Shown in pieces: positions 806 to 32,492 of a stretch of DNA of 40,063 bases. Position 1 is the stretch's first letter. Each line of letters starts with the position of its first letter. A program made the translations under genes and the position numbers. Under the pieces are notes generated by a model, which did not search any database, was not told the DNA's origin, and was given only the letters and a program-made list of their open reading frames with translations. This DNA comes from Octopus bimaculoides (taxonomy: Eukaryota). The DNA lies in NCBI RefSeq assembly GCF_001194135.2, contig NC_068984.1, forward strand, positions 22,930,902 through 22,970,964, in the 5' to 3' direction.

Positions 806-1253
806 TAGAAAATTACTATTTTTAAATCTCACAGATCGTATCGTATAGCCAGCTGGAGACGATGTCTCTTGGGGCTAAATTACAGCAACATTCGTCCTAG
901 ACCGGGACTGCCATGTTATGTTGGCAAACAATCTTTACTCCAAAGTACTGTTGCTGAATATCTCACGTTGTGAGATTTAAAAATCGTAATTTTTTAATTT
1001 ATAAAACTATAAACTATATAAAACTATAAGACTATAATTTGAAAACTATATATTTCGAACGGGAATTTGGCAGCGCCACCTCTAGCCGAACAATTATTCT
1101 GTGCTGATGAAGGGAAATAACCCGGAAATCGCGATACACAGCTATTGTTTTGAGCTGAGTGGGGGTGCTAGATTCCCTTGTTCGAAAATGTAAGGACACA
1201 GATCGTGTCGTATAGCCATCTGGAGACGATGTTGACAAACAATCTTTATTACA
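806..1253 (+). mobile_element. Hammerhead-containing non-autonomous retroelement (retrozyme-like), about 1.1 units, with 12-bp target site duplication
   Basis: ACCGTGCGGAAT flanks both sides (794-805, 1254-1265). A 36-nt internal direct repeat (830-865 vs 1197-1232, 2 mismatches) gives a 367-nt period. 805-832 is an inverted copy of 970-997 (26/28). Homologous to 17982-18330 and 32123-32492. Confidence 0.75.
1099..1141 (+). ncRNA. Type I hammerhead ribozyme motif (copy 1)
   Basis: CTGTG-CTGATGA-AGGG-AAATAA-CCCG-GAA-ATCGCGAT-A-CACAG: stem I CTGTG/CACAG, intact CUGAUGA and GAAA core, palindromic stem III ATCGCGAT, predicted cut after A1136. The stem II closing pair is an A/G mismatch. Confidence 0.8.
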
Positions 1254-1899
1254 ACCGTGCGGAATGACAACCAAATTGCTGGCCTCCAAAGATTTTACAA
1301 TGATTTCTGATTTAGGCACAAGGCCAACAATTTTGAAGGGAAAAGTTTAGTCGATACGACTAACCGCAATGCTTTACCGTTACGCGCGCGCGCGTGCGTT
1401 CACACACGCGCACACACACGCACACACAAGGAAACAGACTAGCTAACCTGTATTAGAATATATTTTGTGGTGAAATGTTTATTTTCCATATAGATGACAC
1501 TAAGGTGCAAAGAGCTAAAGAACGAAGAGTGGTACCATCTGATTAAGTAGGCCCCTGGTGTATAGAAGGAAGAGGGCAGTGGATAGGACCGAACTCCGGG
1601 ATATAGAAGTTTTGACAGAATGTGGGTCGAGGAGGGCATCAGCAGCACTTGCCGTGAGGGAGCGATCTGATGGGAACCCGTCAGTTAAAGAGACGAGAGA
1701 GGGATACAACCCACAGGCGGTTATTTTTAATAAGAGATTAGGATTAGGGTTATCCCCGTCACCATCATCATCATCATCATCATCATCATCGTGTATCCGA
1801 CACGGTCGAAAGCTTTGCTGATCTTGAACGCAATGACATAACTTTCACCAAATTTCTCTAAGGTGTAGCTCAGTGGTAAGTGACATAAGAGATTCGATC

Positions 1900-2560
1900 T
1901 TCAACAGATCGTTACGTAAGTCATGCTAGTTGTCTTTATGGATGAAGAGAAAGTGATGTTGCTTTTAATATCTGTTGTCTTTACTTCTGTGATATTGGAA
2001 ATGAGTACGAAAGGGAGATAGTTGTAAGAGTCAAAGAGGCTTACATTTCTTGGTGATAACACACACTGTAGAGTATTTTCTAATACTGGTAAATATCTTT
2101 GTAAAGAAAGAAAGAATTGAAGAGTGTAACGAGTATAAGGTCGAACTCTGCGGTGCATGGGTTGAGGGAGACGATAAGGACATCATCAGAGACTATGGTC
2201 TTGTTTGTTTGAAACGAGTATTCTGATTTGGGTGATAATCTTGTAGGAGTTGTGGTACTAGGTAAGAGCCATACAGTTATTAGGGGTAAATAGTTTTCAT
2301 TGTTGGTTCTTTTTGATTTTGCTTTTGTTTTTTAGTTTGTTTGGTATTGCTTGAATAACTGTAATGCAGTTATGTGTAGGTAACATGGGGGTTTGGGACA
2401 ACGAGTTTGTGTTATGCGCTAAATATGGAAGGATGTACTCACCCACATAGCTGTTTTTGAGGGAATGAAGCACATGTGCTGCAAGCGGTAGTTAGCATAG
2501 AATCGATGGAACTGCAATCAGTCAGTTGGATTACGGTAGGAGGGAGCAGGTAGCAGAAGA
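1900..2560 (-). mobile_element. Degenerate Penelope-like element ORF remnant (RT thumb to start of GIY-YIG region)
   Basis: Frameshifted minus-strand pieces YRNPTD*LQF (cf. YRKPTD), NYLPLIT, PQPMHRRVR (cf. PPxxAYRRxxNL) and PFVLISNITEVKTTDIKSNITFSSS...YVTIC resemble the PLE consensus; many stops. Confidence 0.5.
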
Positions 2561-3142
2561 GTATTGTGAATGCATACATTCTTAACGCCGTAGGTGGCTC
2601 GTTTTTCAACATTTTTGTAACAATGAGAAGATTGGATCAAACATTTCAGGCTCTTATTGCAATTGTCGTCTTTTCGGTTACTTTTTATGGCGATGATACC
2701 AGAATTTTTCAAACATAGACTAAAAAATAAACAATTGATTTAGAAGATGAAATATTAGTTGATTACATCAACCACAGTATTTTACTATTATTATTTTATG
2801 GAGACCCAAGTATTTAAATTCAGAACGGTAAGTTTCTGCTACTGATTGTCCTAAAAGCAGAAATTAGTATGGCCATAACTATTGTTTATAATTTGTGATT
2901 AACTGAGGTGTCACAAATAAAATTACGAAGGGGTGCTTGTCAATTAAATGATTTGATCTGAGCTCGGGTATTGAAACTAAAATGATTGCAGCGTAAAAGA
3001 CATATTAACCATTCAGAAACCCACAAAGACTGTTAACCTCCTTTAATCATTCATTTGTTATATGGTGTCGAAATTTTCATCACTCGAACTTTGACCTGGT
3101 CAGTGACAACGTTACAATGTAAATTAAGTTAATATGTTATGT

Positions 3143-3372
3143 GTGAGTCAGGACAGCGAACTGACAGAATCGTTGCCAAGGCCAAGCAAAGTGCTTAGCG
3201 ACATTTCGTCCGTCTTTACGTTCTGGGTTCAAATTCCGCCGAGTTTGTCTTTGCTTTTATTCCTTTCGAAGTCGATAAAATAAGTACCACTTGAGCATTA
3301 GGGTTGATGGAAGGGACTTATCCACTCTACCCATTCCATATTACAGGCCTTGTGCAAAAATTTGAAACCAAT
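3143..3372 (+). mobile_element. tRNA-headed SINE (family with ...GGCCTTGTGC...TTTGAAACCAAT tail)
   Basis: Box A-like CTGACAGAATCGTTG and box B-like GGGTTCAAATTCC. Related copies at about 29505-29740 (+), 30195-30390 (+), 32950-33168 (-) and a partial at 1266-1385 (-). Confidence 0.75.
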
Positions 3373-3918
3373 ATGTTGTTGTACTTTTCGTTGCTCAAAA
3401 CTGTGACCTGGTTAACAGTGAAGTTAACAGTCTTAATGTTCAAGTGAAATTAACTGTCTTTCTGTGTCTTTGAATGGCTAACATGTCTTCCACAAGTAAT
3501 TTTATTCTGTTGAAGTTATCTGTTTTCACACATGTCAAACTGGTTATGACATAATTTCAGTTTTGTGATTATGAAGGAAGTTTCTGTTTGCTTTCTCATT
3601 ATATATTAGATTATGGCACACTTCTGATTCCTGAAGATTGCTTTACCATTTTCCCATTTCAAAATCGGGAAAATGGTAAACTGATTGTATGTTTTGTTCG
3701 TTTGCATTCAACAAAATAAGATAAATTGTAAAGACTACACGTAACAGAAGAGACAAATTATTCCATCACTAACATTAAGTTACATCCTTGATAAAGACTT
3801 ATATAATTCCACAAACTATGCATAAAAAAAAATAAGATACGCGAAACTTCACAACCATGTATACGCGTCCAAAATATATACAGATGTGCATTTTGATATA
3901 TATATATATATATATATA

Positions 3919-4556
3919 NNNNNNNNNNNNNNNNNNNNNNNNNNNNNNNNNNNNNNNNNNNNNNNNNNNNNNNNNNNNNNNNNNNNNNNNNNNNNNNNNN
4001 NNNNNNNNNNNNNNNNNNNNNNNNNNNNNNNNNNNNNNNNNNNNNNNNNNNNNNNNNNNNNNNNNNNNNNNNNNNNNNNNNNNNNNNNNNNNNNNNNNNN
4101 NNNNNNNNNNNNNNNNNNNNNNNNNNNNNNNNNNNNNNNNNNNNNNNNNNNNNNNNNNNNNNNNNNNNNNNNNNNNNNNNNNNNNNNNNNNNNNNNNNNN
4201 NNNNNNNNNNNNNNNNNNNNNNNNNNNNNNNNNNNNNNNNNNNNNNNNNNNNNNNNNNNNNNNNNNNNNNNNNNNNNNNNNNNNNNNNNNNNNNNNNNNN
4301 NNNNNNNNNNNNNNNNNNNNNNNNNNNNNNNNNNNNNNNNNNNNNNNNNNNNNNNNNNNNNNNNNNNNNNNNNNNNNNNNNNNNNNNNNNNNNNNNNNNN
4401 NNNNNNNNNNNNNNNNNNNNNNNNNNNNNNNNNNNNNNNNNNNNNNNNNNNNNNNNNNNNNNNNNNNNNNNNNNNNNNNNNNNNNNNNNNNNNNNNNNNN
4501 NNNNNNNNNNNNNNNNNNNNNNNNNNNNNNNNNNNNNNNNNNNNNNNNNNNNNNNN
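3919..4556. other. Assembly gap (others: 6735-7233, 7884-7930, 13539-14020, 15457-16367, 17239-17981, 31361-32122)
   Basis: Runs of N, mostly bordered by (TA)n or (CT)n microsatellites. Confidence 0.99.
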
Positions 4557-4806
4557 AATAAACAAAAGATTCAACATACCAAAACGAGCACCCCATGTAT
4601 CCGGCCTAGCATATAGAAGATTGTTTATCTATATATATTTATGTAAAAGGCGGGCTCTTTTTGAATTGCACTTCGGTACACGTGTTTATACCGGAATAAG
4701 TACTAGGCTTACAAAGAATAAGTCCTGGGGTCGATGTGTTCGACTAAACGTGATGCTCCAGCATGGCCGCAGCCAAATAACTGAAACAAGTAAAAGAATA
4801 TACAAA

Positions 4807-5858
4807 TTGAGTTGGCAAGAAAGTCATTTCGGCTTTTTAGTGTAAAATAAAAGTCATTTTATTTTCATACAAAGAATGAACTTTAATCAATTATATATTT
4901 TCCATTTTGTTCCGTGACCTTTTGCCATCTTTCTGGCAAGTGTGATTTCAGATCATTATCATTATTGAAATTTTTTACCATTTAAATTATTTTGCAGACT
5001 TCGAAATAAATGGTAATTTGATGGCGCAAGGTCAGGGTTGACAGTAAACATCTGATTTGATCTAGTTCCTTGGAAGCAGCTCAAAATACATAACACCTTT
5101 GTAATCCTACCAAATTGACAGCATGACCTTTGTTGATGCAACTCAGCTTTCGATGTGGTTTATGCTGGTTCATTACGCTTGGACCATGACCGTTTTCGAT
5201 TGACGTTATTGTAGACAATCCATTTTTCATCACCAGTGATGATTCGTTTGAAAAATAGGTCGATTTCATTGCGTTTGAGATGCTTATCGCAAATATTGAT
5301 TCATTGTATTAAATGAATCTCCTTCAATTTATGTTGAACCCAAATATCGAGCTTCTTAACGAGTCCAAGATATTTTAAGGGATTTTCAATTGTTGTGCGT
5401 GATACATTTTACCTCTCTGCAATCTGTCGCACAGTTATTTGACAATCAGATTCAATTACGGCTTTGATTCGGTCATCATCAGCTTCAATAGGTCGACCAG
5501 AACGTTGGTCATCTTTGAGTGAAAAATCTCTAGAACGAAATTTTTAAAACCATTTCTGACATGTGCGTTCTGTTAAGCAATCAACACCATAAACTTCAGA
5601 TATCTCTTTGTGAGACTCAACTGCTTTCTTGCCTTTACGGAAATAAAAAGACAAAATATGGTGAAAATGTTCATTTTTGCATTCCATGTTAAAATTGACA
5701 CAGCTGTCAACAAAATTACGCGCAATTTGCTTCTAAAGTAAGCTAAAAGTAACGGCTATCAAAAGTCGAAAGGAAAAATATCACAACATTGACAAAAGTC
5801 ATTCAAAAATGTCGTAACACTATTTGCGAAAAACGAAATTACTTTCTTGCCAACCCAA
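4807..5858 (-). mobile_element. Mariner (Tc1/mariner) DNA transposon, internally deleted, both TIRs present
   Basis: TIRs ATTGAGTTGGCAAGAAAGTCATTTCG (4806-4831) and 5834-5859 match 24/26; TA at 5859-5860. Transposase pseudogene 5687-4883 reads MECKNEHFHHILSFYFRKGKKA...RSGRPIEADDDRIKA...IITGDEKWIVYNN, then jumps to PDLAPSNYHLFRSLQNNLNGKNF...EQNGKYIID*. Confidence 0.92.
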
Positions 5859-6683
5859 TATATATGGAGTGTCGGACCCGAAGATATAGTAAAACACACT
5901 TGCCCAAAGTGCTGCACAGTTGGACTGAACCCGAAACCACTTGGTTGCAAAGCGAGTTTATTAACCACACAGCCATGCCTGTGCATGCTAATGAGATGAT
6001 ATAGTTAACAAGTTAATATATAAAATTACCCATTGATGGATACTCTCAATAAACAAATACCAAACTGTTTATTCTATCTATCACGTTTCACTTCTGTTAG
6101 ACAAATGATGTATCGATTGGTTGACACACAAGACTAAATAACAATGTTGTCGCTGAGTGACAGACAGAAAACAATTGGCTTCAGAGATTCAACGATACAA
6201 CACCTCTATAATACCGGTCTTATGCCTACGCAAAAAGAAGTCATTATCTTTTATTTCGTATCATAAAACCGAAAGAAAAAAATATTGACAGCTACATTCA
6301 CACAGAATCTATAATAAATTGAACAGTGAATTTATGAAACAAACTTTGAAAAATAAGCACCAGTTTTATGAGACCCCATAGTTCGAAGAAACAATCGTGA
6401 TTTTTATCATTTCAGGCACACATATGTATACATACATACAGCGAACTTATACACATAAACTTATATGCACACAAACTTACATATACGTATACACATATCT
6501 ATGCATACATATGCACATAATCAAACATATATATTCTTAAACAAATAAAAATGTTATATATATACGCATACATACAATTACATACATACACACACACACA
6601 TACATATGTACATATATATGCACACACACACACAAACATAACATACACATAACATTTATACAAATATATACATACATATATGT

Positions 6684-6734
<51 letters not shown>

Positions 6735-7821
6735 NNNNNNNNNNNNNNNNNNNNNNNNNNNNNNNNNNNNNNNNNNNNNNNNNNNNNNNNNNNNNNNNNN
6801 NNNNNNNNNNNNNNNNNNNNNNNNNNNNNNNNNNNNNNNNNNNNNNNNNNNNNNNNNNNNNNNNNNNNNNNNNNNNNNNNNNNNNNNNNNNNNNNNNNNN
6901 NNNNNNNNNNNNNNNNNNNNNNNNNNNNNNNNNNNNNNNNNNNNNNNNNNNNNNNNNNNNNNNNNNNNNNNNNNNNNNNNNNNNNNNNNNNNNNNNNNNN
7001 NNNNNNNNNNNNNNNNNNNNNNNNNNNNNNNNNNNNNNNNNNNNNNNNNNNNNNNNNNNNNNNNNNNNNNNNNNNNNNNNNNNNNNNNNNNNNNNNNNNN
7101 NNNNNNNNNNNNNNNNNNNNNNNNNNNNNNNNNNNNNNNNNNNNNNNNNNNNNNNNNNNNNNNNNNNNNNNNNNNNNNNNNNNNNNNNNNNNNNNNNNNN
7201 NNNNNNNNNNNNNNNNNNNNNNNNNNNNNNNNNTATATATTAAAGTTGCTATAGAAAAATTATGAGATAGAGGTTATGCAACCGTCTAAGGGATAAATGT
7301 ATCCGTGAGCAATACTGGTGTATTACCTCACTATGTATAGGCCTTGCTATAAGGTTAACAGTAGTTGGTAATTTAAATAGTAAAACCGTGGTTTGATATA
7401 TTGAGATAAGAAGAGAAATTGAGCAACAATTAAGAATTAGAAGTTGATCATTGGTATTAAAAGGTCATAGCTTAATTGTAGTTCAAGAACATTTACAGCT
7501 GTTTCAGTTTGTTATTTCGAAGGAAATTTACATTTAACTCGTTCCATTTAACAAATATCGTCAGAATGATTTAGAGTTTATCGTAGGAATATAGATAGGA
7601 GGAAAAAGGAAATGAAAAGAAAAAGGAAAAAAAGAAAATGTTGCAATAAGTGGGGAAAATGACTAGTTGACCGGCGGTGTTAGTCGAAGGAGTTACACTT
7701 GGTAGTAATATCCGGTGTTGTCAATTGTAATATTAACGCTGTTTGTGACCGCTAGATAATTCCACATGCTTATGTATATATGTAAACATACATATATATG
7801 CATATGCATGTGTGTATGCGT

Positions 7822-7883
<62 letters not shown>

Positions 7884-7930
7884 NNNNNNNNNNNNNNNNN
7901 NNNNNNNNNNNNNNNNNNNNNNNNNNNNNN

Positions 7931-7982
<52 letters not shown>

Positions 7983-8239
7983 GGGTTTTTTTTGCCAAAT
8001 AAGCACATCGCACAAATATTTGTTCTTCCCTTCTTCTTTATTGTTGTGTTTATTTGAGTTTGCTTTTTCTGAAATCTTTTCTCACACATCCTGTGGCCTC
8101 TTCAGTAAAAGATTTCAGACAAAAGACACTAAAATAAGAACAATAATAAAGCGGAAGTGAAGAACGACTATATAATGCGTGTGTTTATTTGGTAAAAAAA
8201 AATGACCATCCCGAAATATAACTATATATATATATATAT

Positions 8240-8530
8240 GGTGGTTGTCTACTCCTAAAACAGAGTTTGACCACCTCCTGCACCTACACCTTAGCCCTTT
8301 CATGGCGTCTGATGTGGCTTTTTAAACCAGACAGTGTTTTGAAAAAACACCCACACAGATTGCACCTCTGATTTGCACTACCAATACCTGCAAGTAAGTT
8401 CTGCTCATTGTGGATCCTAACATGTCTTTTAAGACCCCCATTGGATTTGCAAACCCTCTGGCACACACCACATTCAAACGTGTGCACAGACATATAATCA
8501 GAATAGCTGGATGAGGTTTGTTTTCCATAT
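8240..8530 (-). mobile_element. LINE (RTE-like) 3' end encoding two C2H2 zinc fingers, embedded in (TA)n
   Basis: ORF 8284-8493: FECGVCQRVCKSNGGLKRHVRIH and RCNLCGCFFKTLSGLKSHIRRH (C-x2-C-x12-H-x3-H) with no TGEKP linker, (TA)n on both sides. The LINE assignment is inferred from the similar terminal fingers of RTE elements. Confidence 0.6.
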
Positions 8531-9062
8531 CTATATATATATATATATATGCGCGCATACTTTTCACATATCCATATTTAGTTTAATATTATCTGAGCAA
8601 TAGCATTATAGCATGCTTTACAAAGCTCCTCCACCAGTATCGACTACCATATGTTATCATACAGTAAGAATTCTCCTTTCACTGGATATACATGTATCCG
8701 CATGATTCATACGAAAAACTAATAATGCAATAAGATGGAATGAAGGGGCAATAATCCTGATCACTACAATAGTTTTGTGCATTAGTATCGGCTGGTAATT
8801 GCTGAGTGTTTCACATATTTTACACGTTATTGCATTAACATGATCCAGCAATAACTGTGTACCAGCACGTCTTCGAGGGGGCTGGTTGAGAGGTGTGTGT
8901 GTGCACTGCACACACACACACACACACACACCCCCCTATATATAATTGCACTTCATATATATATAAAAGATACGAAATAATTTTATTCTCAAACGAAGGA
9001 TAATGCTAATGATATAGCAAGAACAGGATAAACTATCCGTATTTTGGAGAAAAATCTGTCGG

Positions 9063-10498: not shown

Positions 10499-10539
<41 letters not shown>

Positions 10540-10686: not shown

Positions 10687-10721
<35 letters not shown>

Positions 10722-13480: not shown

Positions 13481-14104
13481 ATAACTGCAAACATTGCAAA
13501 TTGTTGTTTATATTAATTATATATATATATATATATATNNNNNNNNNNNNNNNNNNNNNNNNNNNNNNNNNNNNNNNNNNNNNNNNNNNNNNNNNNNNNN
13601 NNNNNNNNNNNNNNNNNNNNNNNNNNNNNNNNNNNNNNNNNNNNNNNNNNNNNNNNNNNNNNNNNNNNNNNNNNNNNNNNNNNNNNNNNNNNNNNNNNNN
13701 NNNNNNNNNNNNNNNNNNNNNNNNNNNNNNNNNNNNNNNNNNNNNNNNNNNNNNNNNNNNNNNNNNNNNNNNNNNNNNNNNNNNNNNNNNNNNNNNNNNN
13801 NNNNNNNNNNNNNNNNNNNNNNNNNNNNNNNNNNNNNNNNNNNNNNNNNNNNNNNNNNNNNNNNNNNNNNNNNNNNNNNNNNNNNNNNNNNNNNNNNNNN
13901 NNNNNNNNNNNNNNNNNNNNNNNNNNNNNNNNNNNNNNNNNNNNNNNNNNNNNNNNNNNNNNNNNNNNNNNNNNNNNNNNNNNNNNNNNNNNNNNNNNNN
14001 NNNNNNNNNNNNNNNNNNNNATATATATATATATATATATATACAGCTGCATATGCGTGGCTGTGTGATAAGAAGTTTTCTTCCCAACCACATGGTTCCG
14101 CGTT

Positions 14105-14480
14105 CAGAAAAAGCACAGAAAGAGTGTTCGGGAGAGACAGGTTTAACGATTAAAAAGAAGGAAAAAATTCATGACGTTTCGGATGCTACCCCTTCATCAG
14201 AAAAGGGTAGAAGAATGAGAAAAGATGGTGGGGAAACAAAAACCCAATTAAGATCCATGTGGGAATGTGGTTCTGTTGGGGGTGCTAAGGTGAGAGGAGC
14301 AGGTGGGTGGAGTGTAAAGATGGGTATAGTGTGTGCGTGTGTGTATCTGCATGTGTGTGTGTAGTGGTATGAGGTGCGTGCGGTTTCCTGGAGAGCGTGT
14401 AGGTGTTGGCAAGTGTAGGAGTGTAGTGTCGTGGGATAGTGTGGGAAAATGGTGTGTAGGTGCAATTGTAGCGTGCATGT
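14105..14480 (-). mobile_element. Penelope-like element 3' terminal remnant (CA-rich UTR followed by a minimal hammerhead)
   Basis: On the minus strand a long C/A-rich tract leads into CTGATGAAGGGGTAGCATCCGAAACGTC, the arrangement known for PLE pseudo-LTRs. Confidence 0.55.
14173..14200 (-). ncRNA. Minimal PLE-type hammerhead ribozyme motif
   Basis: CTGATGA-A-GGG-GTAGCA-TCC-GAA-ACGT-C: intact core, extra A after A9, 3-bp stem II, 4-nt palindromic stem III; stem I is degenerate. Confidence 0.7.
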
Positions 14481-15285: not shown

Positions 15286-16407
15286 TTATTAATTCTATTA
15301 TTAATTGACGATTCTCTGCCCTTATTCTTGTATATTTTATATTTGATATCTCTAAGTTAGATGGCTAAACCGTAATCCCTTCCACACGGGACTTTTTTTC
15401 ATACGGGACTATTTGTGACGCACATGGAATAGATTTCTTTGAGGTGAGGTGCCTGANNNNNNNNNNNNNNNNNNNNNNNNNNNNNNNNNNNNNNNNNNNN
15501 NNNNNNNNNNNNNNNNNNNNNNNNNNNNNNNNNNNNNNNNNNNNNNNNNNNNNNNNNNNNNNNNNNNNNNNNNNNNNNNNNNNNNNNNNNNNNNNNNNNN
15601 NNNNNNNNNNNNNNNNNNNNNNNNNNNNNNNNNNNNNNNNNNNNNNNNNNNNNNNNNNNNNNNNNNNNNNNNNNNNNNNNNNNNNNNNNNNNNNNNNNNN
15701 NNNNNNNNNNNNNNNNNNNNNNNNNNNNNNNNNNNNNNNNNNNNNNNNNNNNNNNNNNNNNNNNNNNNNNNNNNNNNNNNNNNNNNNNNNNNNNNNNNNN
15801 NNNNNNNNNNNNNNNNNNNNNNNNNNNNNNNNNNNNNNNNNNNNNNNNNNNNNNNNNNNNNNNNNNNNNNNNNNNNNNNNNNNNNNNNNNNNNNNNNNNN
15901 NNNNNNNNNNNNNNNNNNNNNNNNNNNNNNNNNNNNNNNNNNNNNNNNNNNNNNNNNNNNNNNNNNNNNNNNNNNNNNNNNNNNNNNNNNNNNNNNNNNN
16001 NNNNNNNNNNNNNNNNNNNNNNNNNNNNNNNNNNNNNNNNNNNNNNNNNNNNNNNNNNNNNNNNNNNNNNNNNNNNNNNNNNNNNNNNNNNNNNNNNNNN
16101 NNNNNNNNNNNNNNNNNNNNNNNNNNNNNNNNNNNNNNNNNNNNNNNNNNNNNNNNNNNNNNNNNNNNNNNNNNNNNNNNNNNNNNNNNNNNNNNNNNNN
16201 NNNNNNNNNNNNNNNNNNNNNNNNNNNNNNNNNNNNNNNNNNNNNNNNNNNNNNNNNNNNNNNNNNNNNNNNNNNNNNNNNNNNNNNNNNNNNNNNNNNN
16301 NNNNNNNNNNNNNNNNNNNNNNNNNNNNNNNNNNNNNNNNNNNNNNNNNNNNNNNNNNNNNNNNNNNATGTATGTATGTGTGTGTGTATGTATACATAGA
16401 CGTGTAT

Positions 16408-16794
16408 GTGAAATTGCGAGGCCTAGTGGTTAGATTATTGAACTCGTGATTGCAAGATCATAATTTCGATTCCCAGACCGGGCGCTGTGAATGTTTATTG
16501 AGCGAAAACACCTAAAGCTCCACGGGGCTCCGGCAGGGGATGGTGACGAACCCTGCTATACTTTTTCACCACAACTTTCTCTCACTCTTACTTCCTGTTT
16601 CTGTTGTGCCTGTAATTCAAAGGGTCAGCCTTGTCACACTGTGTCACGCCGAATACCCCCGAGAACTACGTTAAGGGTACACGTGTCTGTGGAGTGCTCA
16701 GCCACTTGCACGTTAATTTCATGAGCAGGCTGTTCTGTTGATCGGAATCAGCTGGAACCCTCGACGTCGTAAGCGACGGAGTGCCAACAACAAC
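16408..16794 (+). mobile_element. Full-length tRNA-headed SINE with (AAC)n tail
   Basis: Head GAGGCCTAGTGGTTAG...TTTCGATTCCCAGACCGG; the body recurs partially at about 21690-21790; tail CCAACAACAAC. Confidence 0.8.
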
Positions 16795-17039
16795 ATGTAT
16801 GTATGTGTGTGTGTATGTATACATAGACGTGTATGTGAAATTGCGAGGCCTAGTGGTTAGATTATTGAACTCGTGATTGCAAGATCATAATTTCGATTCC
16901 CAGACCGGCGGTGCATTATGCTCTTGAGCAAAGTACTTCATTTTTATCCATTTTCTTCGTCCCTATAATGTGAAGGGATGCAGGGACAGAATCTTCAGGC
17001 ACCATCTACATAAGGTCCTAGCAGAAGTAAATGAATGAC

Positions 17040-17238: not shown

Positions 17239-17981
17239 NNNNNNNNNNNNNNNNNNNNNNNNNNNNNNNNNNNNNNNNNNNNNNNNNNNNNNNNNNNNNN
17301 NNNNNNNNNNNNNNNNNNNNNNNNNNNNNNNNNNNNNNNNNNNNNNNNNNNNNNNNNNNNNNNNNNNNNNNNNNNNNNNNNNNNNNNNNNNNNNNNNNNN
17401 NNNNNNNNNNNNNNNNNNNNNNNNNNNNNNNNNNNNNNNNNNNNNNNNNNNNNNNNNNNNNNNNNNNNNNNNNNNNNNNNNNNNNNNNNNNNNNNNNNNN
17501 NNNNNNNNNNNNNNNNNNNNNNNNNNNNNNNNNNNNNNNNNNNNNNNNNNNNNNNNNNNNNNNNNNNNNNNNNNNNNNNNNNNNNNNNNNNNNNNNNNNN
17601 NNNNNNNNNNNNNNNNNNNNNNNNNNNNNNNNNNNNNNNNNNNNNNNNNNNNNNNNNNNNNNNNNNNNNNNNNNNNNNNNNNNNNNNNNNNNNNNNNNNN
17701 NNNNNNNNNNNNNNNNNNNNNNNNNNNNNNNNNNNNNNNNNNNNNNNNNNNNNNNNNNNNNNNNNNNNNNNNNNNNNNNNNNNNNNNNNNNNNNNNNNNN
17801 NNNNNNNNNNNNNNNNNNNNNNNNNNNNNNNNNNNNNNNNNNNNNNNNNNNNNNNNNNNNNNNNNNNNNNNNNNNNNNNNNNNNNNNNNNNNNNNNNNNN
17901 NNNNNNNNNNNNNNNNNNNNNNNNNNNNNNNNNNNNNNNNNNNNNNNNNNNNNNNNNNNNNNNNNNNNNNNNNNNNNNNNN

Positions 17982-18358
17982 ATACATTTCTAAATCTCTC
18001 AGAGAGATTTATGCAGTACTGATGCGATAAAGTAGTTGTATGCTGTCAACTTAATGTGACAGTCCCATGAAGGGAATAATACTACTGCTATTTAGCCCTA
18101 GGAAGCAGCACCGCTTCCTGTCGGCCTTGACACATTTCCTGTGTCCTTATGTTTACAAGTGGGAGACAAGCACCTCCAATTAGCTAAGCCTGCATCCAGA
18201 GACATGTTTCTGAGTCTTTGCTCGTCATCAGTCTGGAGTAGCAATGGCCTGCTAGTTGGAGATGCCTGTCAAGCTCTCGTAAACCTATAATAATTCTAGT
18301 GAAACACATTCACTGATTTCAGAAATATCAGTGAATGTGTTTCACTAGAATTATTATA
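17982..18358 (-). mobile_element. Hammerhead-containing retrozyme-like element (copy 2) with 5' fold-back
   Basis: Shares AAGGACACAG..GTGTC, GGGCTAA, GGGACTGYCA and the terminal ATCTC..GAGATTTAGAAAT blocks with the 0.8 kb and 32.3 kb copies. A perfect 32-bp inverted repeat (18286-18317 / 18327-18358) sits at its 5' end. Confidence 0.75.
18195..18237 (-). ncRNA. Type I hammerhead ribozyme motif (copy 2)
   Basis: TCCAGA-CTGATGA-CGAG-CAAAGA-CTCA-GAA-ACATGT-C-TCTGGA: perfect 6-bp stem I, intact core, palindromic stem III, GUC cleavage triplet 18203-18201. The stem II closing pair is a C/A mismatch. Confidence 0.88.
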
Positions 18359-19849: not shown

Positions 19850-20390
19850 AGCTGAACGTGGATCCCTTGACCAAGTTTGCATACATGTGGCTGATAACAT
19901 CATAAGACTTGAAAGGCAGCTCCTTGATCAGCATTCCTTATCTGATAACCTAAAATACATGCTCTAAGAAGTCGCACGACTCTACCACAACATATCATCA
20001 GATGAAAGGGTAAGCTTATATGAGCAGAAGACCATGCATGGATACGTTAATAAAAAGTTCCGAGATGATAGTTCCATTGATCATGAAAGCGGTCTATCAT
20101 GGACCAACAACCGGATTACAACTTCCCACTTTGAAGGATATGCTATTGCAATCCAAGAACAGGAAATATCAACCAAATACCTGATGCACAAAAGAGACAT
20201 AGATGCAGTAAAATTAGACAACCTATGCAGAATTTGTGGAGTTAACACCGAAGATATCACCCGCATCATAAACAGTTGTCCGAAATTGTTATCACGGTAT
20301 TATCTACCGATGAAACATGATGCTGTGGCTTGGACATTGTATATTGAGATCCGTCGAAAGGATAACCCCGAGCGCGCACACACGCACACA
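19850..20390 (+). mobile_element. R4/Dong-type (RLE) non-LTR retrotransposon C-terminal remnant
   Basis: NIIRLERQLL...EQKTMHGYVNKKF...FEGYAIAIQEQEISTKYL...CRICGVNTEDITRIINSC (CCHC knuckle with H to R) ...RYYLPMKHDAVA, motifs typical of R4/Dong-like elements upstream of the endonuclease. Confidence 0.78.
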
Positions 20391-20399
20391 CTCACAAAT

Positions 20400-20700
20400 T
20401 TATCTGTAATATCTCTTTTCGATTGCTATGAGGTCAAAACTACATATTTACCGAACCAAATAACAAGAGTAAAGGAACATATAAAAGAAAGCAACATGGC
20501 GTGCTACACGAATGTTAAACAATCAGAAATCTGATAAGAACAAGGAGAGAATATGAAAATAATTGCAACTCAAGTTTTATTACAAGTAAGACAAAAGAAA
20601 TACTTGAGAATGAATAGAATTAACCCTTAGGAGACGATAGGGCCGATCCATCGGCCGAAAAGTCTAATAACGAAGAAGATTGTATTAGTTCATTCAATTT
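20400..20700 (+). mobile_element. Possible PLE GIY-YIG 3' remnant
   Basis: TRVKEHIKESNMAC resembles the GIY-YIG RxxEH motif and is followed by a decayed hammerhead-like hairpin at 20622-20665. Confidence 0.3.
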
Positions 20701-24856: not shown

Positions 24857-24879
24857 TTCGAGTGAGATATTTTTCCGCA

Positions 24880-25455
24880 TTCATAACGTGTATAAGCAGT
24901 GGTTAAGCAAGGATCACCTTCCAGAGCCTTTCGCCAAAGATGGACGTGTCAAACACAAAGTGATGCTCTACATTTGGTGAAATTGTGAGGGGATAATTCA
25001 CTAGGAGTTTGTTCCGGGTGGTCGAACCATCGATGCCAACCTGTACTCCAAACAGCTGGAGCGGCAAAAATACCCGGCATCGGTTAATAGAAAGCGAACT
25101 CTTCTGCAGCAAGACAACGCATGACTTCATACCGATCGAACGACCCATAATAAATTCCAGGAACTTGAAGAAATCGAACTGATGCCACAGCCAGCATATA
25201 GTCTGGACCCAGTTCCCTAGGATTATTACCTGTTCCGATCCATGGCTCACTTCCTGCGCTCGCGACACTTCATCAACCAAGAGGAGGTGAAAGCTTAAGT
25301 GAAGGAGTTCTTTGCCTCGATTAACAAGAACTGGTATCATTGTGGGGATCAAAGAACTTGTAGAAATGTGGCTTCAGACAGTGCAGCACAATGACCTACA
25401 CTTTCAATGCTGGGCTGCTTTTGTTGTAACTATTACAAAACACAATCAGCATATT
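24880..25455 (+). mobile_element. Mariner transposase C-terminal half (pseudogene)
   Basis: KVMLYIW*NCEGIIH*EFVPGGRTIDANLYSKQL...LLQQDNA*LH...PAYSLDPVP*DYYLFRSMAHFL...IKELVEMWLQTVQH. Confidence 0.88.
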
Positions 25456-25469
25456 CACACGTATTCACA

Positions 25470-25810
25470 GATATTGCACGCAATGGAAGGTTACTTGCGT
25501 TTCAACAAGACTCAGCAACTTCTAATATACCCCCTATAACCCAAGAATGGATACCAGACAATCGTCACCATCATATAACAAGACTCTTGTGGCCTCCAAA
25601 CTCACCAGGTTTATATCCTATGGACTATAACGTTTGGAGCGTTGTTAAAAGGGAGACTAATCGACATCTTCACAATACTATAACTTCATTGAAGACCAAA
25701 ATAGTTCAGGTAATCTCCGAAATGAATAAGAACGATTTCGTGCGAGATTGTCGACGATTTAGGCCCTGCATTGAAGTAGTCACCGACTTTCAAGGCGAAT
25801 TCCTAGAATA
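25470..25810 (+). mobile_element. maT (DD37D) transposase C-terminal fragment
   Basis: FQQD (D at 25509-25511) ...WPPNSPGLYPMD (D at 25623-25625) with exactly 37 residues between the two aspartates, then YNVWSVVKRETN. Confidence 0.82.
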
Positions 25811-25915
25811 CTCTTATAGAAAAGCTTATCGAGAGCGTGTACACAATTTTCTCTTAAAATACGTTTGGTATTTGCTAGTTAAGGGTTGCTTTATTAAATT
25901 ACCAAATGTTTCCTC

Positions 25916-26060
25916 AAATAAATAAATAAATAAATAAACGGATGGATGGATGGATGGATTGATGGATGGATGGATGGATGGATGGATGGATGGATGGATA
26001 AATGGATGGATGGATGGATGGATTGATGAATGGATGGATGGATGGATGGATGGATGGATG
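25916..26060. repeat. (TAAA)n plus (GGAT)n tetranucleotide repeats
   Basis: Seen directly. Confidence 0.95.
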
Positions 26061-26320
26061 GGTATCGAAAGCGATCAAAAGCCGTTCCCGACCCATAGGC
26101 TTGTAATGGCGATCTCCTGGATTCTGTGACGAATATAATGCCCCCTAGATGGGACGCCGGTCCGTCACAGGATTACTCATATTTACCAGCTGAGTGGACG
26201 GAAACAATGTGAAATGAAATGTTTTGCTCAAGAACACAATGCATCGGCCGGTCTGGGAATCGAAACCATAACCTTACGATCATAAGTGCAGCATCCAAAC
26301 CATTAAGTCACACACCACCA
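26060..26320 (-). mobile_element. tRNA-headed SINE
   Basis: Minus strand head ...TTAATGGTTTGGATGC...GGTTTCGATTCCCAGACCGG and core TTCTTGAGCAAAACA..TCCACTCAGCTGG. Confidence 0.72.
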
Positions 26321-28944
26321 CATAGATACATACATATGTGTCGTGAGTCTGATTGTGGGTCCTGGTTCGGGAGTTCCAGAGTTTTGAGAAATGTGGGACC
26401 ACTTTTTAGTCACTATTGTTTGCATATCTATTCGGACCTGGATAGCAGCATCTGCCAGGGTCCTAGTCATTGAGTTAATTAGCATATCATGGAATTGCCT
26501 CTGGCAAAAGGTCATTTACAGACGCCTCAACGGATTCAGGACAGATGACGCCCTTCAGCATTTTAGCAACTCATCAACGATAAGTTAAGTCTATGAAAAT
26601 CTTGTATCCTGATGATTACTGTGCAGGTGATACTTGTCGGACCAGAGCAATCCAAGTTTGAAAAGTGACGGAATGAGACTAGCTCTGCACAAAGCATACC
26701 CACAATGATAATATTCAAATTTCAGGTTCCTTAACAAACCAAGACACCAGCACCAACACCATCACACTTTCTTCATAAGTCCAGTGGCGATAGGGAAAGA
26801 GGCGATATGGATAAGTAATGGATGCAACTGAAAATCTTCAACTTTGACTCTGTAGTCAGGCAGCCGCAAGGCGATGGCGGCAGTCTAATGATTGAAACGA
26901 GACAAAATTAAAAGCTACATACATACATACATACATACGTACGTACGTGCGTGCGTACGTGCGTGCGTGCGTGCGTGCGTGGAGTATATCCAGCAACGTC
27001 GATATCACGATCTTATGGCTTCTGTACCTGTAAGCATTTCATAGAAGCTATTGATCCACAGTTATTTATTTTAGAGCCAAATTACATGTGTGTTCTTTTA
27101 TAGAATTCCTTGTTTCACTATAATATATTGCGTAAAACATATTCCTCTCAACGTTTATTGTAATTACTTAAGTAAGCTGTTTACTATTACTCTATATAAA
27201 AAGTAATTAACTATATTATTGCCGAGCTGTAGAAAGGGCTACGAAAGTTATAGAGTTAAGATTACTTCACAAGAAAGTTTCGGTCCCGCTACATGAGACT
27301 TTGGCAGGTGTCTTTTGATGTAGCCTTCGATTGACCTCTTTTTCTTCTTTCTGTTTTTTTTTAATTACATTTCATACACGGAAAACGTGCAGAGAATCGT
27401 AGGAACTATTCACAGATGGTAGTATTCATACCTCCCCTGGTTTAACATACCTGCTCGACCCATGGGTTCCTTTAGCAGAACCAGTTCTGTTGCAAATATT
27501 AAGTTAAGGACTAAGACTTGAGGATAACTTTTTCCCTTTGTTCAAGCTATTTCACAGAGAGGGTCATTTCAACAGCATTATAGCCTCACTCCACCGCCCG
27601 AAGCAAAACAATGCATCAGAGCCTATAGTATTTATTTATCTAAATCAAACCATAGCATACTTAGATTGTCATTGGGTCTCTATATCCATGGTGTCGCCAA
27701 ACATCTTCCCATTTTGCTCGTTCCTTAAGACAGCAGTGCTCTGAAGCCGTGAAGACGTGTGTTTGTGTGTACCAGTGTAAATGAGTATATCACTATTTGA
27801 TGGAGATCGATAGTTATACATAGCTATTTGATGGAGATCGATAAAACATGTATGGAACAGGAATAATTACCGAGTTTAACTTTGACGTTGTTGCCCCAAC
27901 ATGGCCACAGTCCAATAAGTGAAACGAGTAAAAGAACAAAAAATGTGTAAATTATTGAATCGCTTTAATTGTATATTAACAAGGAAGGTAACTCAGTGAG
28001 CACGTTAGATGTCAAGGGATATAACTATAAAACCAAGGGGAACAACTACAGATCAACTATAATACTGCCAGTAATTTATTAGTAATATGGTCAGTAGATT
28101 AGAGACATAATCCAAAATATATTTCTCCATTGATTTCGAAATTCTTTTGAGTTGTCCTGTAACATGTGTATTTTTTTTAGATATGACTTCTTTTATTGCC
28201 TTCAGTTTCGATACCTTATGATTTCAAATTTACTAATAAATCATATATATATATTATTATTCATCTATTATTCCTTTTACTAATATTTTTTTTTGATAAC
28301 ACATCCTAACTTAACTACCAACAGACATGGACTTTTCCTTCTGTGTTAATGGTTGCTTCATGATTATCACAACGGGCATATTTACAACAAATCTTAAAAT
28401 ACCATATATATTATATTTGACTTACATCACAAGCCATGAGCAAATTTGTACAGGGCATTCAAGTGATTTGCATGAGATGTTGAAGAGCAAGAAGCCCTCA
28501 ATGCCTTTTGCAGAACCTGTGATTTATAAAGAACAACAAGATCATACTATAAACTGCTACTTTTTTAATATTTTTAATTTATGATTTTTCTTTAAAACAA
28601 AAACACAGGTTTGAAATCATATACATCAGCTTAGATTCTGTGCCTAGACCTGTATCACATAATTAAATAATGTCAGAGATAACCCTTTTCAGCCGAGCTC
28701 AACTCTATTAAAGATGAAATAGATATTGATGAAGTTAAACTCACTGGGAGAATTGGACTTTCGTCAGGTTCCAAATACAAACCAAAAGAGAGTATGGATC
28801 CAATTCTTTTTACAAGTTAAAATTTAAGAGACCATCTGCGAGATTTAGAATTGAGAAAGAAATCAGTCGAGGTTTCCCACGCTTATTTGAAGAAAATACA
28901 ACAGTACATTACTATAGATCAAGGAATTTCAACTTAGTTGTTCA

Positions 28945-29122
28945 TTTCAAAGTGGATTCTTCTATGACATTAATGAACTTCTTGCAAGTTTATCTAAATG
29001 TATGGTATGAAAATGGAAAATATTTATAGATTCATCACTATAAATATTTTCCATTTTCATACCATACATTTAGATAAACTTGCAAGGAGTTCATTAATAT
29101 CATAGAAGAATCCACTTTGAAA
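28945..29122. repeat. 85-bp near-perfect inverted repeat with 8-nt loop
   Basis: Arms 28945-29029 and 29038-29122 are complementary at 83 of 85 positions; loop ATTCATCA. Confidence 0.97.
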
Positions 29123-30670
29123 GGTTCTAAAAATTTTGAAATTTTTTTTTGCTTATGACCTTAACAAATATCTTCCTTTAGTGAAGTTTAATGTAAAGAA
29201 GTAATAAAACTACTGGAATTGATAAGGGAATTGATTAAGTATTAATTCTTTCAGAAATTAATGATGACCATTCTTTTCTATTGTAATCCTAAAGCTTAGA
29301 GAGCTGCAGTTCTTAATGAATCTTGCTCACATATTCATTAACATAGCAATTACTTTAAGATTTTTTCATATATTCCACTGGCAATCGCGGTATTAAATTG
29401 CACTGAAAAGGTCTCCATGTTAAAATAAGATTCTTTTAAGTGCACTGAATAATCAACGGGGATAGTTACATATTACCATTATGGAATAAGATACCTTTTA
29501 AACTTAAAGAAAGGCTGCAAGCTGGCAGAATTGTTAACACATCAGATAAAATATTTAGCAGTTTTTCTTCTGGCTCTTTATGTTCTGAATTCAAATCCTG
29601 ACGATTTGAACTCAGAACGTAAAAACTTTGTTTTTCATTCCTTTGAAATCGATAAAACAAAGTAACAGTCAGGTATTGGGGGGTCTTTCGATTTGACTTG
29701 CTCCCTCCTTTCAAAATTGCTGGCTTTGAACCCGGCTTCACATTCAGGGGAAATGTTGTGATCTCAGTTTAATACACCATAGAAACAGAGTACCTGGCAA
29801 TATGAGAGCTAGGGCTCAAGAAAATATTTTTAGAAAGATGTAGGAAGACCGAGAAATAGTTGGTTGAGCAACATAAAGGAATATACATAGACGAAGATGC
29901 TGGAAATCGTAAGATTAACAGATAATCAAGAAATATAGAGGGAGGAAACTGAAATTTATAGTGTATCTTTACAGTCTCTCTAGACTATAGATTTAGATTA
30001 ATTAGATAATTAATTTTTTTTTTAAAAAACGGATAAAATAATTTGCTAATCGTTCCAGTTTTTTAACATTCTGAGTTCTGACCCCCAAAACCCGTCAAGT
30101 GCTGAAGTCAATGGTATCACCTAAACCCTTCCCCTCAAAATTACTGGCCATGTATCCAAGTCAGAAACTATTGTTATGATCATCGTCTAAGAATAAGCTG
30201 GTAAGTTGATAGCACATCAGACAAAATGCTTCGGCAGAATTTTTTCCAACTCTTTACATTCTGAGTTCAAATCACACCAAAGTCAACTTTACCTTTCATC
30301 CTTTCCAGGTTGTTACAATAAGTACCAGTTGAGTTCTGGGGGTGATAAATTTCAGGCCTTGTGCCTATACTAGAAAGGATTATTATAATCTAAGAATGCT
30401 GAAGGTGTAGTAATTTAAACTAAATACACTAACATAGCTTATTAAACACCATAAACATTTATTTACCCCTTTCTATTATATTTTAAACTAACTAAAAAGC
30501 CACATTCAGTGCAGACTTTTAAGCTAGCTCCAGCAGAGGGGTAATTGGACCTACAGCCCAAAACTAAAGAAGAAAGTAATAATAAAGCATTTATTGGTAT
30601 CCTAGCATCTCAGATTTATATCACAGAGTATCACATTTGGAGAATTTTGTATCAGTGTGACATTTGGAAA

Positions 30671-31138
30671 TCACTGTAAAGCAGCAGGATAAACAATATT
30701 TTTGGTTTTACCATTTGGCATGAGTAGGAAGAGATTGTTGCCATTTCCAAATCTGGAACAACCAACATAGAGCTAACCATGGGAAAAGCAGTTCTGCATG
30801 AGGTGAAGTTCAACAATTTTGAATGGTTGTCCTTGACTCTTGTTAATTGACATTGCAAAACAAACTCTTTCTGGAAATTGAAGTCTCTTGAATTCAAAGG
30901 GCATGTCTGCTAGAATCAGTGGAATTCTTGAAATAAACACATTTTCTCCCTATCTTTGTCCAGTGAGGATTGTTGCTTCCAAAAGATGTGGATGCATTTG
31001 CCTGACAATCAGTCTTGTTCCATTGCACAGCTTTGGGGGATCCAGATTTTTTAAAAGCATGATTGGAACTCCTTTCTTCAATGTCAGTTTGTGAGAAGGC
31101 ATTCCAGGAAGATCCAAAGAGTTGAGAAACTCAATAGT
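30671..31138 (-). mobile_element. Helitron Rep/Hel Pif1-helicase C-terminal remnant
   Basis: [41 protein letters not shown]...FAMSINKSQGQ...CFSHG*LYVGCSR...TKNIVYPAALQ*; two in-frame TAG stops (30952-30950, 30775-30773). Confidence 0.93.
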
Positions 31139-31154
31139 TAGTATTATAATAGAT

Positions 31155-31156
31155 AA

Positions 31157-31222
<66 letters not shown>
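31155..31222. repeat. (GATA)n repeat
   Basis: Seen directly; truncates the Helitron fragment. Confidence 0.95.
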
Positions 31223-32122
31223 TCAGGCGAATATGGTACTTAAATTTAGGCACCAGAATTTAGTATGGTATTATCCATACAGTTTCAAAATAGGGTGATT
31301 AAAATCAAAATAAGCAACAAGGATATCCAGAGGGTATCTTTGTTGCTTATTTTGATATATNNNNNNNNNNNNNNNNNNNNNNNNNNNNNNNNNNNNNNNN
31401 NNNNNNNNNNNNNNNNNNNNNNNNNNNNNNNNNNNNNNNNNNNNNNNNNNNNNNNNNNNNNNNNNNNNNNNNNNNNNNNNNNNNNNNNNNNNNNNNNNNN
31501 NNNNNNNNNNNNNNNNNNNNNNNNNNNNNNNNNNNNNNNNNNNNNNNNNNNNNNNNNNNNNNNNNNNNNNNNNNNNNNNNNNNNNNNNNNNNNNNNNNNN
31601 NNNNNNNNNNNNNNNNNNNNNNNNNNNNNNNNNNNNNNNNNNNNNNNNNNNNNNNNNNNNNNNNNNNNNNNNNNNNNNNNNNNNNNNNNNNNNNNNNNNN
31701 NNNNNNNNNNNNNNNNNNNNNNNNNNNNNNNNNNNNNNNNNNNNNNNNNNNNNNNNNNNNNNNNNNNNNNNNNNNNNNNNNNNNNNNNNNNNNNNNNNNN
31801 NNNNNNNNNNNNNNNNNNNNNNNNNNNNNNNNNNNNNNNNNNNNNNNNNNNNNNNNNNNNNNNNNNNNNNNNNNNNNNNNNNNNNNNNNNNNNNNNNNNN
31901 NNNNNNNNNNNNNNNNNNNNNNNNNNNNNNNNNNNNNNNNNNNNNNNNNNNNNNNNNNNNNNNNNNNNNNNNNNNNNNNNNNNNNNNNNNNNNNNNNNNN
32001 NNNNNNNNNNNNNNNNNNNNNNNNNNNNNNNNNNNNNNNNNNNNNNNNNNNNNNNNNNNNNNNNNNNNNNNNNNNNNNNNNNNNNNNNNNNNNNNNNNNN
32101 NNNNNNNNNNNNNNNNNNNNNN

Positions 32123-32492
32123 TAACTCTATTTCTGAAAACCAGTGGATAGATTCCACTGAAATTAGATAAATAACCTTCGAGCAGATAGTCAGCAGCGC
32201 CGCCTGGCTAGGGCTTGGCTGCTCTGCATTGACAAGGGGCAACACCCTGAAACTAGTCTGCAGATGCCAAACCAGCAGGGGGACACTGCTGACCTCCCCT
32301 GTTCGAAGGTTATAAAGGACACAGGTTTCGTGTGTCACATAGCTAGCTAGAGGCGATGGCTTCTTGGAGCTAATTCACGGCAGCTTTCGTCCTAATTTTG
32401 GGACTGCCATGTTGGCTTGGCGATAACTATTAATTTCCAGTACCGCTGCCGTAGTCTCCTTTAGAGAGACTTAGAAATATTAATAACTCTAT
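32123..32492 (+). mobile_element. Hammerhead-containing retrozyme-like element (copy 3), one full unit
   Basis: TAACTCTAT at both ends (32123-32131, 32484-32492; 361-nt period). Rod-like pairing AACCTTCGAGCAG/CTGTTCGAAGGTT and GTCAGCAG/CTGCTGAC surrounds the hammerhead; downstream blocks are shared with the other two copies. Confidence 0.75.
32223..32264 (+). ncRNA. Decayed type I hammerhead motif (copy 3)
   Basis: TCTGCA-TTGACAA-GGGG-CAACA-CCCT-GAA-ACTAGT-C-TGCAGA: perfect stem I, palindromic stem III and GUC triplet at 32256-32258, but the core reads TTGACAA instead of CTGANGA. Confidence 0.7.

Follow-up and report, generated by a model that had tools for sequence, protein, structure and literature searches.

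Three divergent hammerhead-bearing repeats with Penelope-like insertion scars in a 40-kb stretch of the Octopus bimaculoides genome

The stretch of Octopus bimaculoides DNA analysed here (contig NC_068984.1, positions 22,930,902 to 22,970,964; 40,063 nt, hereafter the window) harbours three separate loci, named c1, c2 and c3, at each of which lies a copy of a small repeat with a conserved predicted RNA fold and a hammerhead motif or its relic. The interval 806-32492, within which the copies were first noticed, is therefore to be read as three loci and not as one feature. Very probably, c1-c3 are independent old insertions of a small non-coding, non-autonomous family that is derived from Penelope-like elements (PLEs) but has no open reading frame (ORF), i.e. 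of a retrozyme without long terminal repeats (a non-LTR retrozyme). Retrozymes are an abundant source of circular RNA in animals, and their mobiliser has been inferred rather than shown; with the three copies, the list of these elements now extends to a cephalopod family.

Three copies and their conserved fold

Homologous copies are present at each of the three places named in the initial annotation (Table 1). Their pairwise identity is 55-61%, and a MAFFT alignment spans the full unit. A profile built from c1-c3 and run with nhmmer (filters off) detected nothing in the window beyond the three copies and the inverted fragments at their ends. c1 amounts to 1.2 units arranged head to tail with no ORF between them; its period follows from the self-match of 830-865 with 1197-1232, and its second unit carries a 63-nt internal deletion between two ATGT microhomologies. 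Of the two unit lengths proposed at the outset, the 367 nt of c1 thus stand on this self-match, whereas the 361 nt of c3 depend solely on the 8-nt repeat TAACTCTA at 32123-32130 and 32484-32491. Together with approximately 347 nt for c2, the family has units of about 340-370 nt. c2 (GC content 42% in 17982-18330) was located correctly but not fully delimited: its end had been set at 18330, but the 5' end includes an inverted duplication of 32 nt and therefore lies at 18358. There is no N within c1, c2 or c3. An assembly gap (17239-17981) adjoins the 3' end of c2 and another one (31361-32122) the 5' end of c3, and further units may be concealed in both; the finding itself is independent of continuity over any assembly gap.

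Table 1. Positions of the repeat copies, their hammerhead motifs, their insertion scars and a neighbouring endonuclease fragment
Feature	Position	Strand	Remarks
c1, whole insert	806-1253	+	448 nt
c1, complete unit	830-1196	+	367 nt; GC 39%
c1, second unit, partial, head to tail	1197-1253	+	by self-match and alignment
c2, about one unit	17982-18328	-	3' end reads ..TTAGAAATGTAT into gap 17239-17981
c2 including inverted duplicate	17982-18358	-	
c3	32123-32491	+	361-nt unit plus 8-nt terminal redundancy TAACTCTA; GC 47%
c1, type I hammerhead	1099-1141	+	stem I CTGTG/CACAG; core CTGATGA...GAAA; helix III palindrome ATCGCGAT
c2, type I hammerhead	18195-18237	-	stem I TCCAGA/TCTGGA; core CTGATGA...GAAA; helix III ACATGT
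c3, hammerhead relic	32223-32264	+	stem I TCTGCA/TGCAGA; helix III ACTAGT; core TTGACAA
c1, left target-site duplication	794-805		ACCGTGCGGAAT; 12/12 match with 1254-1265
c1, right target-site duplication	1254-1265		ACCGTGCGGAAT; abuts the insert
c1, inverted copy of the canonical 3' end at the 5' edge	806-829	-	terminal hairpin arm, TTAAAAAT, tail
c2, inverted duplicate of the first 32 nt after the opening TATTTCTGAA	18327-18358	+	
c3, (TA)7 microsatellite at the 3' end	32492-32505		likely target site
Degenerate GIY-YIG endonuclease fragment	39621-39953	+	PF01541, 25 bits against a cut-off of 22.6; outside the repeat family

For the analysis of structure the units were permuted to begin at the hammerhead cleavage site (alignment A3), and a consensus fold was calculated with RNAalifold. 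This fold comprises 91 pairs in 14 helices, with 87.9% of the cells paired. Compensatory changes, i.e. changes on both sides of a pair, occur in 35 of the 91 pairs, compared to 14.9±2.7 in column shuffles (none of 500 shuffles reached 35) and to 2-8 in controls with slid alignments. The minimum free energies are -111.8 kcal/mol for the single unit of c1 (z = -6.2), -121 kcal/mol for the stretch 17982-18321 of c2 (z = -5.9) and -147.6 kcal/mol for c3 (z = -8.9). The predicted unit RNA is a branched rod, in which hammerhead stem I runs on into a rod of about 45 bp; the far end of the rod is a domain of five to six hairpins including an invariant AAGGACACAG hairpin and a terminal hairpin, which is followed by TTAGAAAT.

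All helices listed in the initial annotation were recovered (stem I, the rod, GACAC/GTGTC, (G/T)TCC/GGGA, the hairpin that changes from TGCCA to TGTCA, and ATCTC/GAGAT before TTA(G/A)AAAT), and the compensatory changes quoted there are genuine and visible in the consensus fold. Four of the six pairs of stem I are altered on both sides (CTGTG/CACAG, TCCAGA/TCTGGA, TCTGCA/TGCAGA), the TGCCA to TGTCA hairpin has a C-G to U-A exchange at A3 columns 152/165, and the 3-bp stem II shows one G-C to A-U change. An extra hairpin is common to c2 and c3 (AGTGAA/TTCACT versus AGTGGA/TCCACT). c1 has at 976-1050, between the 3' tail and the rod, an AT-rich segment with a 17-nt tandem repeat (TATAAAACTATAAGACTA, 2.1 copies), and since an AGTGRA/TYCACT hairpin occupies that place in c2 and c3, the segment represents a subfamily-specific replacement. 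The initial description as a covarying, structured non-coding family with a type I hammerhead is upheld by the 35 compensatory pairs and by z values between -5.9 and -8.9. The compensatory changes imply that the three copies descend from long-diverged sublineages, which kept their fold in this way while the RNA was under selection.

This pattern bears on the idea that the units are satellite DNA, amplified at the DNA level by unequal crossing-over or segmental duplication and carrying a hammerhead-like motif without present role. In its favour, two of the copies abut assembly gaps, where tandem arrays often hide, and the cores are partly decayed. Against it, the 448-nt insert of c1 stands isolated between the two arms of a perfect target-site duplication, and the copies differ by 40-45% and yet keep their pairing by compensatory changes, which points to selection on RNA and not to homogenisation at the DNA level. 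We consider a satellite origin extremely improbable.

An ORF of 62-73 codons runs across the rod on the antisense strand in all three copies (1035-1253(-), 18102-18287(+) and 32123-32338(-)). The three peptides share no more than about 29% identity and lack homologues; peptide searches with the longest unit reading frames found no homologous proteins, and those with the translated open antisense frames retrieved 0 further copies. These ORFs are probably explained by the GC-rich, stop-poor rod.

The hammerhead motif

A type I hammerhead had been assigned to each copy, and the rod of each copy does enclose one. Its conserved core C3U4G5A6N7G8A9...G12A13A14...U16.1-H17 is intact in c1 and c2, whereas c3 is a relic with a mutated core, in which TTGACAA stands where CTGATGA is expected. 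c1 and c2 share CUGAUGA, a 3-bp stem II with a 6-nt loop, GAAA and a stem I of 5-6 bp. In c1 the core starts at 1104 and cleavage is predicted after A1136, at an AUA site; in c2 the core starts at 18231 and cleavage is predicted between 18201 and 18200, i.e. between C and T of GTCT. A hammerhead descriptor, written after c1 and c2 had been seen, matches only these two copies in the window, misses c3 and gives 0 matches in 200 dinucleotide shuffles.

In each of the three copies, helix III forms a perfect palindrome, the sequence of which differs from copy to copy (ATCGCGAT, ACATGT and ACTAGT). Such a palindrome has been described as characteristic of those type I hammerheads of PLEs, newts and the axolotl that depend on dimerisation (PMC4209133, PMC7229834); in these, helix III is reduced to 1-3 bp, and positions 15.x-16.x together with loop 3 make up the palindrome. 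Two c1 cores are predicted to cofold via the 8-bp palindrome with -25.5 kcal/mol, compared to -18.8 kcal/mol for two separate monomers. For c2 and c3, dimers are predicted to form without use of the helix III palindrome, so that cofolding is informative for c1 only.

Another core, CTGATGA..GAAACGTC at 14200-14177(-), was considered and rejected as a copy of the family: its stem I is poor, its nhmmer E value is 3.1 and the sequence that follows belongs to another repeat. Helix III of this core has no loop, in the 'minimal' style of PLEs, and its surroundings are rich in AC, with a (TA)n run and a gap at a distance of about 130 nt. The core may be a chance motif or a decayed or unrelated relic, possibly of a PLE.

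Insertion scars and the origin of the family

The scars left by insertion are an element that the present analysis adds to the initial annotation, and they are distributed among the loci, with a partial tandem and an inverted fragment of the 3' end in c1, an inverted duplicate of the 5' end in c2, and a tail next to (TA)7 in c3. The 12-nt target-site duplication of c1 may be seen against only about five independent 12-mer direct repeats outside low-complexity sequence, at spacings of 200-800 nt, in the whole window. At the 5' edge of c1, positions 803-833 are the reverse complement of 969-999 (29 of 31 positions), and a CACA microhomology joins the inverted piece to the direct unit. The inverted duplicate of c2 forms a palindrome with 32-bp arms together with 18286-18317. 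c3 ends with TTAGAAAT and a 13-nt tail, after which (TA)7 begins. The 3' end of c3, the outer end of the inverted fragment of c1 and the 5' start of c2 all fall within about 2 nt of A3 column ~238. Such a shared end is expected of reverse transcription that has one fixed internal start and proceeds for one round or a little more along a circular or multimeric template.

As hallmarks of PLE insertion, the literature describes partial tandems with a neighbouring 5'-truncated copy in inverted orientation, a tail, (TA)n as target and an internal start of reverse transcription (PMC8557442, PMC11167929), with (TA)n being a preferred PLE target (PMC8557442). By comparison with this published description, the scars at the three loci match insertion of the PLE type. 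Taken together, the non-coding unit, the hammerhead, the covariation and the 12-nt target-site duplication support the interpretation as a retrozyme-like family, as had been proposed initially.

The same scars have to be weighed for a SINE-like hammerhead element (SINE, short interspersed nuclear element) of the kind represented by Schistosoma Sm-alpha, which would be mobilised from a linear transcript by a long interspersed nuclear element (LINE) of the RTE or CR1 type, with neither PLE nor circle. The dispersed occurrence of the copies and their length of about one unit would fit such an element, and a 12-nt target-site duplication with 5' inversion (twin priming) is a LINE hallmark, too. 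Probable LINE remnants occur in the window, namely a weak zf-RVT region at 19968-20531 as well as 1730-1900(-) and 39262-39558, the latter two recognised by eye and without Pfam match, and SINEs and LINEs abound in Octopus genomes (PMC13282606). However, the units lack a poly(A) or simple-repeat tail and end instead with a hairpin, TTAGAAAT and the 13-nt tail, no tRNA-like or 5S-like head was found in them, and both the (TA)n target and the arrangement of c1, with more than one unit head to tail, are in line with PLEs. A SINE-like origin therefore seems quite improbable to us.

Alternatively, the units could be nothing but the pseudo-LTRs, solo or truncated, of an autonomous PLE, in which case neither an independent ORF-less element nor a separate life cycle would exist. 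In favour of this are the minimal, palindromic helix III, which the hammerhead shares with those of PLEs (PMC4209133), and the PLE-like architecture of the insertions (PMC8557442); moreover, the consensus sequences of Xenopus retrozymes are sister to PLE pseudo-LTRs (bioRxiv 10.64898/2026.07.22.740005) and a fragment of a PLE endonuclease is present in the window. On the other side, c1 repeats at 367 nt head to tail with no ORF between the units, c2 and c3 each comprise one full unit, the start and end of which coincide in unit position, and coding sequence for reverse transcriptase (RT) or endonuclease (EN) adjoins no copy. We regard this explanation as improbable; it overlaps with the reading as a PLE-derived retrozyme because a retrozyme is an ORF-less PLE.

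The endonuclease fragment at 39621-39953, a C-terminal piece of a canonical PLE, relates to the question of the helper. Its long relatives comprise approximately 620-770 amino acids and match it at their C terminus. Four of the six relatives that were scanned (724-753 amino acids) have both an RVT_1 and a GIY-YIG domain and the other two have one domain each; the relatives with both are thus canonical endonuclease-bearing PLEs. This shows that PLEs are or were present in the genome; Penelope families with recent insertions have been described for Octopus genomes (PMC13282606). The fragment itself is broken, at a distance of 7 kb from c3, and a Pfam scan and six-frame reading revealed no RT or EN coding sequence in or adjoining any copy. 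PLE remnants had been named as candidate helpers: a remnant does exist in the window, but it is a single broken piece that cannot itself serve as a helper.

Several observations speak against the assignment of c1-c3 to PLE-derived retrozymes or limit it. A 12-nt target-site duplication and 5' inversions also arise by LINE-mediated insertion. Arrays with at least two full units are not seen, with c2 and c3 being bounded by gaps. The covariation rests on three sequences, from which the structure was also derived, because no further copies were retrieved: the nhmmer profile found no extra copy in about 14 kb of O. bimaculoides sequence from a 20-kb locus, in a 21-kb ENA locus and in four short PLE contigs, and an exact-pattern scan of JGI metagenome contigs for three invariant blocks gave 0 matches. 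The 110 nt that follow the GIY-YIG fragment are unrelated to the units or to the 14-kb region of the window and gave low-complexity AC matches only; likewise, the four short PLE contigs have no similarity to the units and provide no sequence link to a PLE pseudo-LTR. The comparison with Rfam that had been suggested initially yielded no match for the hammerhead models, neither at the gathering score nor at E<=10 on the window nor with the 86-nt stretches of c1 and c2, probably because helix III is nearly absent. UUGACAA replaces CUGAUGA in the core of c3, the helices of which are otherwise kept. The closing pair 10.1-11.1 of stem II, normally G-C, is A.G in c1, C.A in c2 and G.U in c3, and G-C pairs follow one step further in from the core. 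Judged from the non-canonical 10.1-11.1 pair and the mutated c3 core, self-cleavage of these particular copies is doubtful. As assembled, none of the loci has two ribozymes; since each has a single one, no locus can release a unit-length RNA alone. The mismatches at the base of stem II, the dead core of c3 and the single ribozyme per assembled locus imply that these three loci are decayed, inert relics.

Known relatives, proposed life cycle and neighbouring repeats

Metazoan non-LTR retrozymes have units of 150-450 bp, with repeats of 350-390 bp in Mytilus galloprovincialis (Cervera & de la Pena 2020, PMC7229834), and the class has been described in many invertebrates including a mollusc. The octopus family resembles it in the type I hammerhead, the non-coding unit of 150-450 bp with less than 50% GC, the self-paired RNA and the lack of an LTR, a primer-binding site (PBS) and a polypurine tract (PPT), furthermore in a target-site duplication longer than 4 bp, the co-occurrence with PLEs and the molluscan host; in size, the units are nearest to the mussel repeats. 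Metazoan retrozymes are further defined by head-to-tail arrays, with a hammerhead in each unit, and by unit-length linear and circular RNA; the copies seen in the window comprise one or 1.2 units, with no arrays visible. The invertebrate retrozyme hammerheads that have been assayed self-cleave as single motifs (PMC7229834), whereas helix III of the octopus copies is only a palindrome. In this respect the octopus units are closer to newt satellite 2 and the axolotl retrozymes (HHR_Amex1), with units of about 330-350 nt, a weak helix III and a palindromic loop, which are active there as dimers (PMC7229834). Those are vertebrate repeats that form huge tandem arrays and have conserved contacts between loops 1 and 2, and the likeness is one of description; a similarity of sequence is not to be expected.

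Pseudo-LTRs of PLEs with minimal hammerhead ribozymes (min-HHRs) share with the octopus units a palindromic or absent helix III and an extremely variable sequence with compensatory changes (PMC4209133, PMC8557442, PMC11167929) as well as the partial tandems, the inverted 5' copy, the tail, the (TA)n targets and the internal start of reverse transcription. The octopus copies differ in that no RT-EN ORF lies between repeats, stem II has 3-4 bp compared to 6-8 bp in min-HHRs, and the highly conserved G10.1-C11.1 pair of the latter is not kept. Plant LTR retrozymes (PMC4918200) are also non-autonomous and hammerhead-bearing, and circular RNA intermediates have been proposed for them. They have type III hammerheads in LTRs, a PBS and a PPT, 4-bp duplications, a length of 600-1000 nt, a high GC content and Gypsy helpers (PMC4918200). 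Animal retrozymes were recently argued to be derivatives of PLE pseudo-LTRs (2026 preprint, 10.64898/2026.07.22.740005). The insertion scars in the octopus agree with this proposal and support it.

Sm-alpha of Schistosoma, a SINE-like repeat, is likewise dispersed, non-coding and about 330 nt in length, and carries a type I hammerhead. The bulge in stem I (UAC) and loop 2 (CAAAGA) of c2 may resemble those of Sm-alpha. The likeness to Sm-alpha is again one of description, and a tRNA-like pol III head was not found in the octopus units. The canonical hammerheads of Sm-alpha are cited in PMC4209133.

No paper reporting hammerheads or retrozymes in cephalopods was found in our literature searches. 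Published surveys of octopus repeats list many unclassified SINEs and recent Penelope insertions and do not mention ribozymes (PMC13282606, PMC8967140), and some octopus repeats filed as unclassified SINE or unknown may be elements of the present type.

Starting from the conserved fold, the ribozyme motif and retro-insertion with PLE-like scars, we infer the following steps for a life cycle of the PLE-derived retrozyme family (as opposed to the three relics). Multimeric RNA would arise by transcription of tandem arrays or as rolling-circle product. By analogy with published ribozymes, the hammerhead would be silent in the monomer and act only if two copies pair within a multimeric transcript. 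Cleavage would free a monomer with 5'-OH and 2',3'-cyclic phosphate ends, which, as published work suggests, could be circularised by the tRNA ligase of the host (RtcB). The RT-endonuclease of a PLE would then recognise the conserved 3' hairpin region. To judge from the scars, reverse transcription would begin at a fixed internal site approximately 13 nt past TTAGAAAT, and one round or slightly more would be copied from the circular or multimeric template. Integration by target-primed reverse transcription would give rise to the target-site duplication, the partial tandem, the inverted 5' copy and the preference for AT or (TA)n. RNA-to-RNA replication as a cause of the conserved fold finds no support here.

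A more far-reaching version is put forward tentatively and seems rather unlikely at present: the octopus would possess a retrozyme that is active today and yields circular RNA, its invariant hairpin domain outside the ribozyme (the AAGGACACAG hairpin together with the TTAGAAAT-bearing terminal hairpin) would serve as the platform for the PLE RT-endonuclease, and reverse transcription would start at a fixed point on the circle. If this were true, an active, PLE-recognised octopus retrozyme would offer a defined animal system for testing the dependence of retrozymes on PLEs. The three loci contribute, at base level, the scars that are expected of Penelope-type integration (a target-site duplication, a copy longer than one unit, an inverted 5' fragment, a common end with tail and a (TA)n target), and these scars suggest which of the conserved hairpins may matter for mobilisation.

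The window is rich in microsatellites and full of transposon debris. The best named protein match of the reverse-transcriptase fragment at 19968-20531 is from Octopus bimaculoides, with 67% identity, and for this reason the initial attribution to a cephalopod-like genome holds. The fragment (plus strand) contains a weak zf-RVT region below the cut-off and is probably a non-LTR remnant. A second probable remnant of this type at 1730-1900(-) shows the RT motif 'KAFDRV' by eye and has no Pfam match, and the same applies to an RTE/CR1-like C-terminal tail at 39262-39558(+), directly before the GIY-YIG fragment, which was recognised by eye without Pfam match.

A fragment of a Helitron-type Pif1 helicase at 30776-31222(-) (Pif1_2B, 72 bits; Pfam match 30953-31222(-)) ends at the gap that begins at 31361, about 0.9 kb before c3. 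Probable DNA-transposase remnants are found at 25395-25922(+), with weak DDE_1 and DDE_3 matches below the Pfam cut-offs, and at 4965-5732(-), where the translated motifs alone look mariner-like by eye. An ORF with C2H2 zinc fingers is located at 8287-8577(-).

The many Rfam microRNA matches at E<=10 on the window are artefacts of microsatellites or inverted repeats. The top sub-threshold microRNA scores were obtained on both strands of a near-perfect hairpin of about 119 nt at 28974-29092, which looks like a miniature inverted-repeat transposable element or an inverted repeat and not like a microRNA. A near-identical direct duplication of about 100 nt (16383-16481 and 16810-16908, period 427) lies beside the gap 15457-16367; it contains tRNA-like GGTTAGA...TTCGATTCCC motifs, in which ARAGORN finds no tRNA, and is either a pair of tRNA-derived SINEs or an assembly duplication. 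Another short, dispersed SINE-like repeat with 77-87% identity occurs at 14035-14107, 33777-33829, 36583-36653 and 37430-37479, and its translation '...AVGLNPEPCG...' recurs in several ORF fragments.

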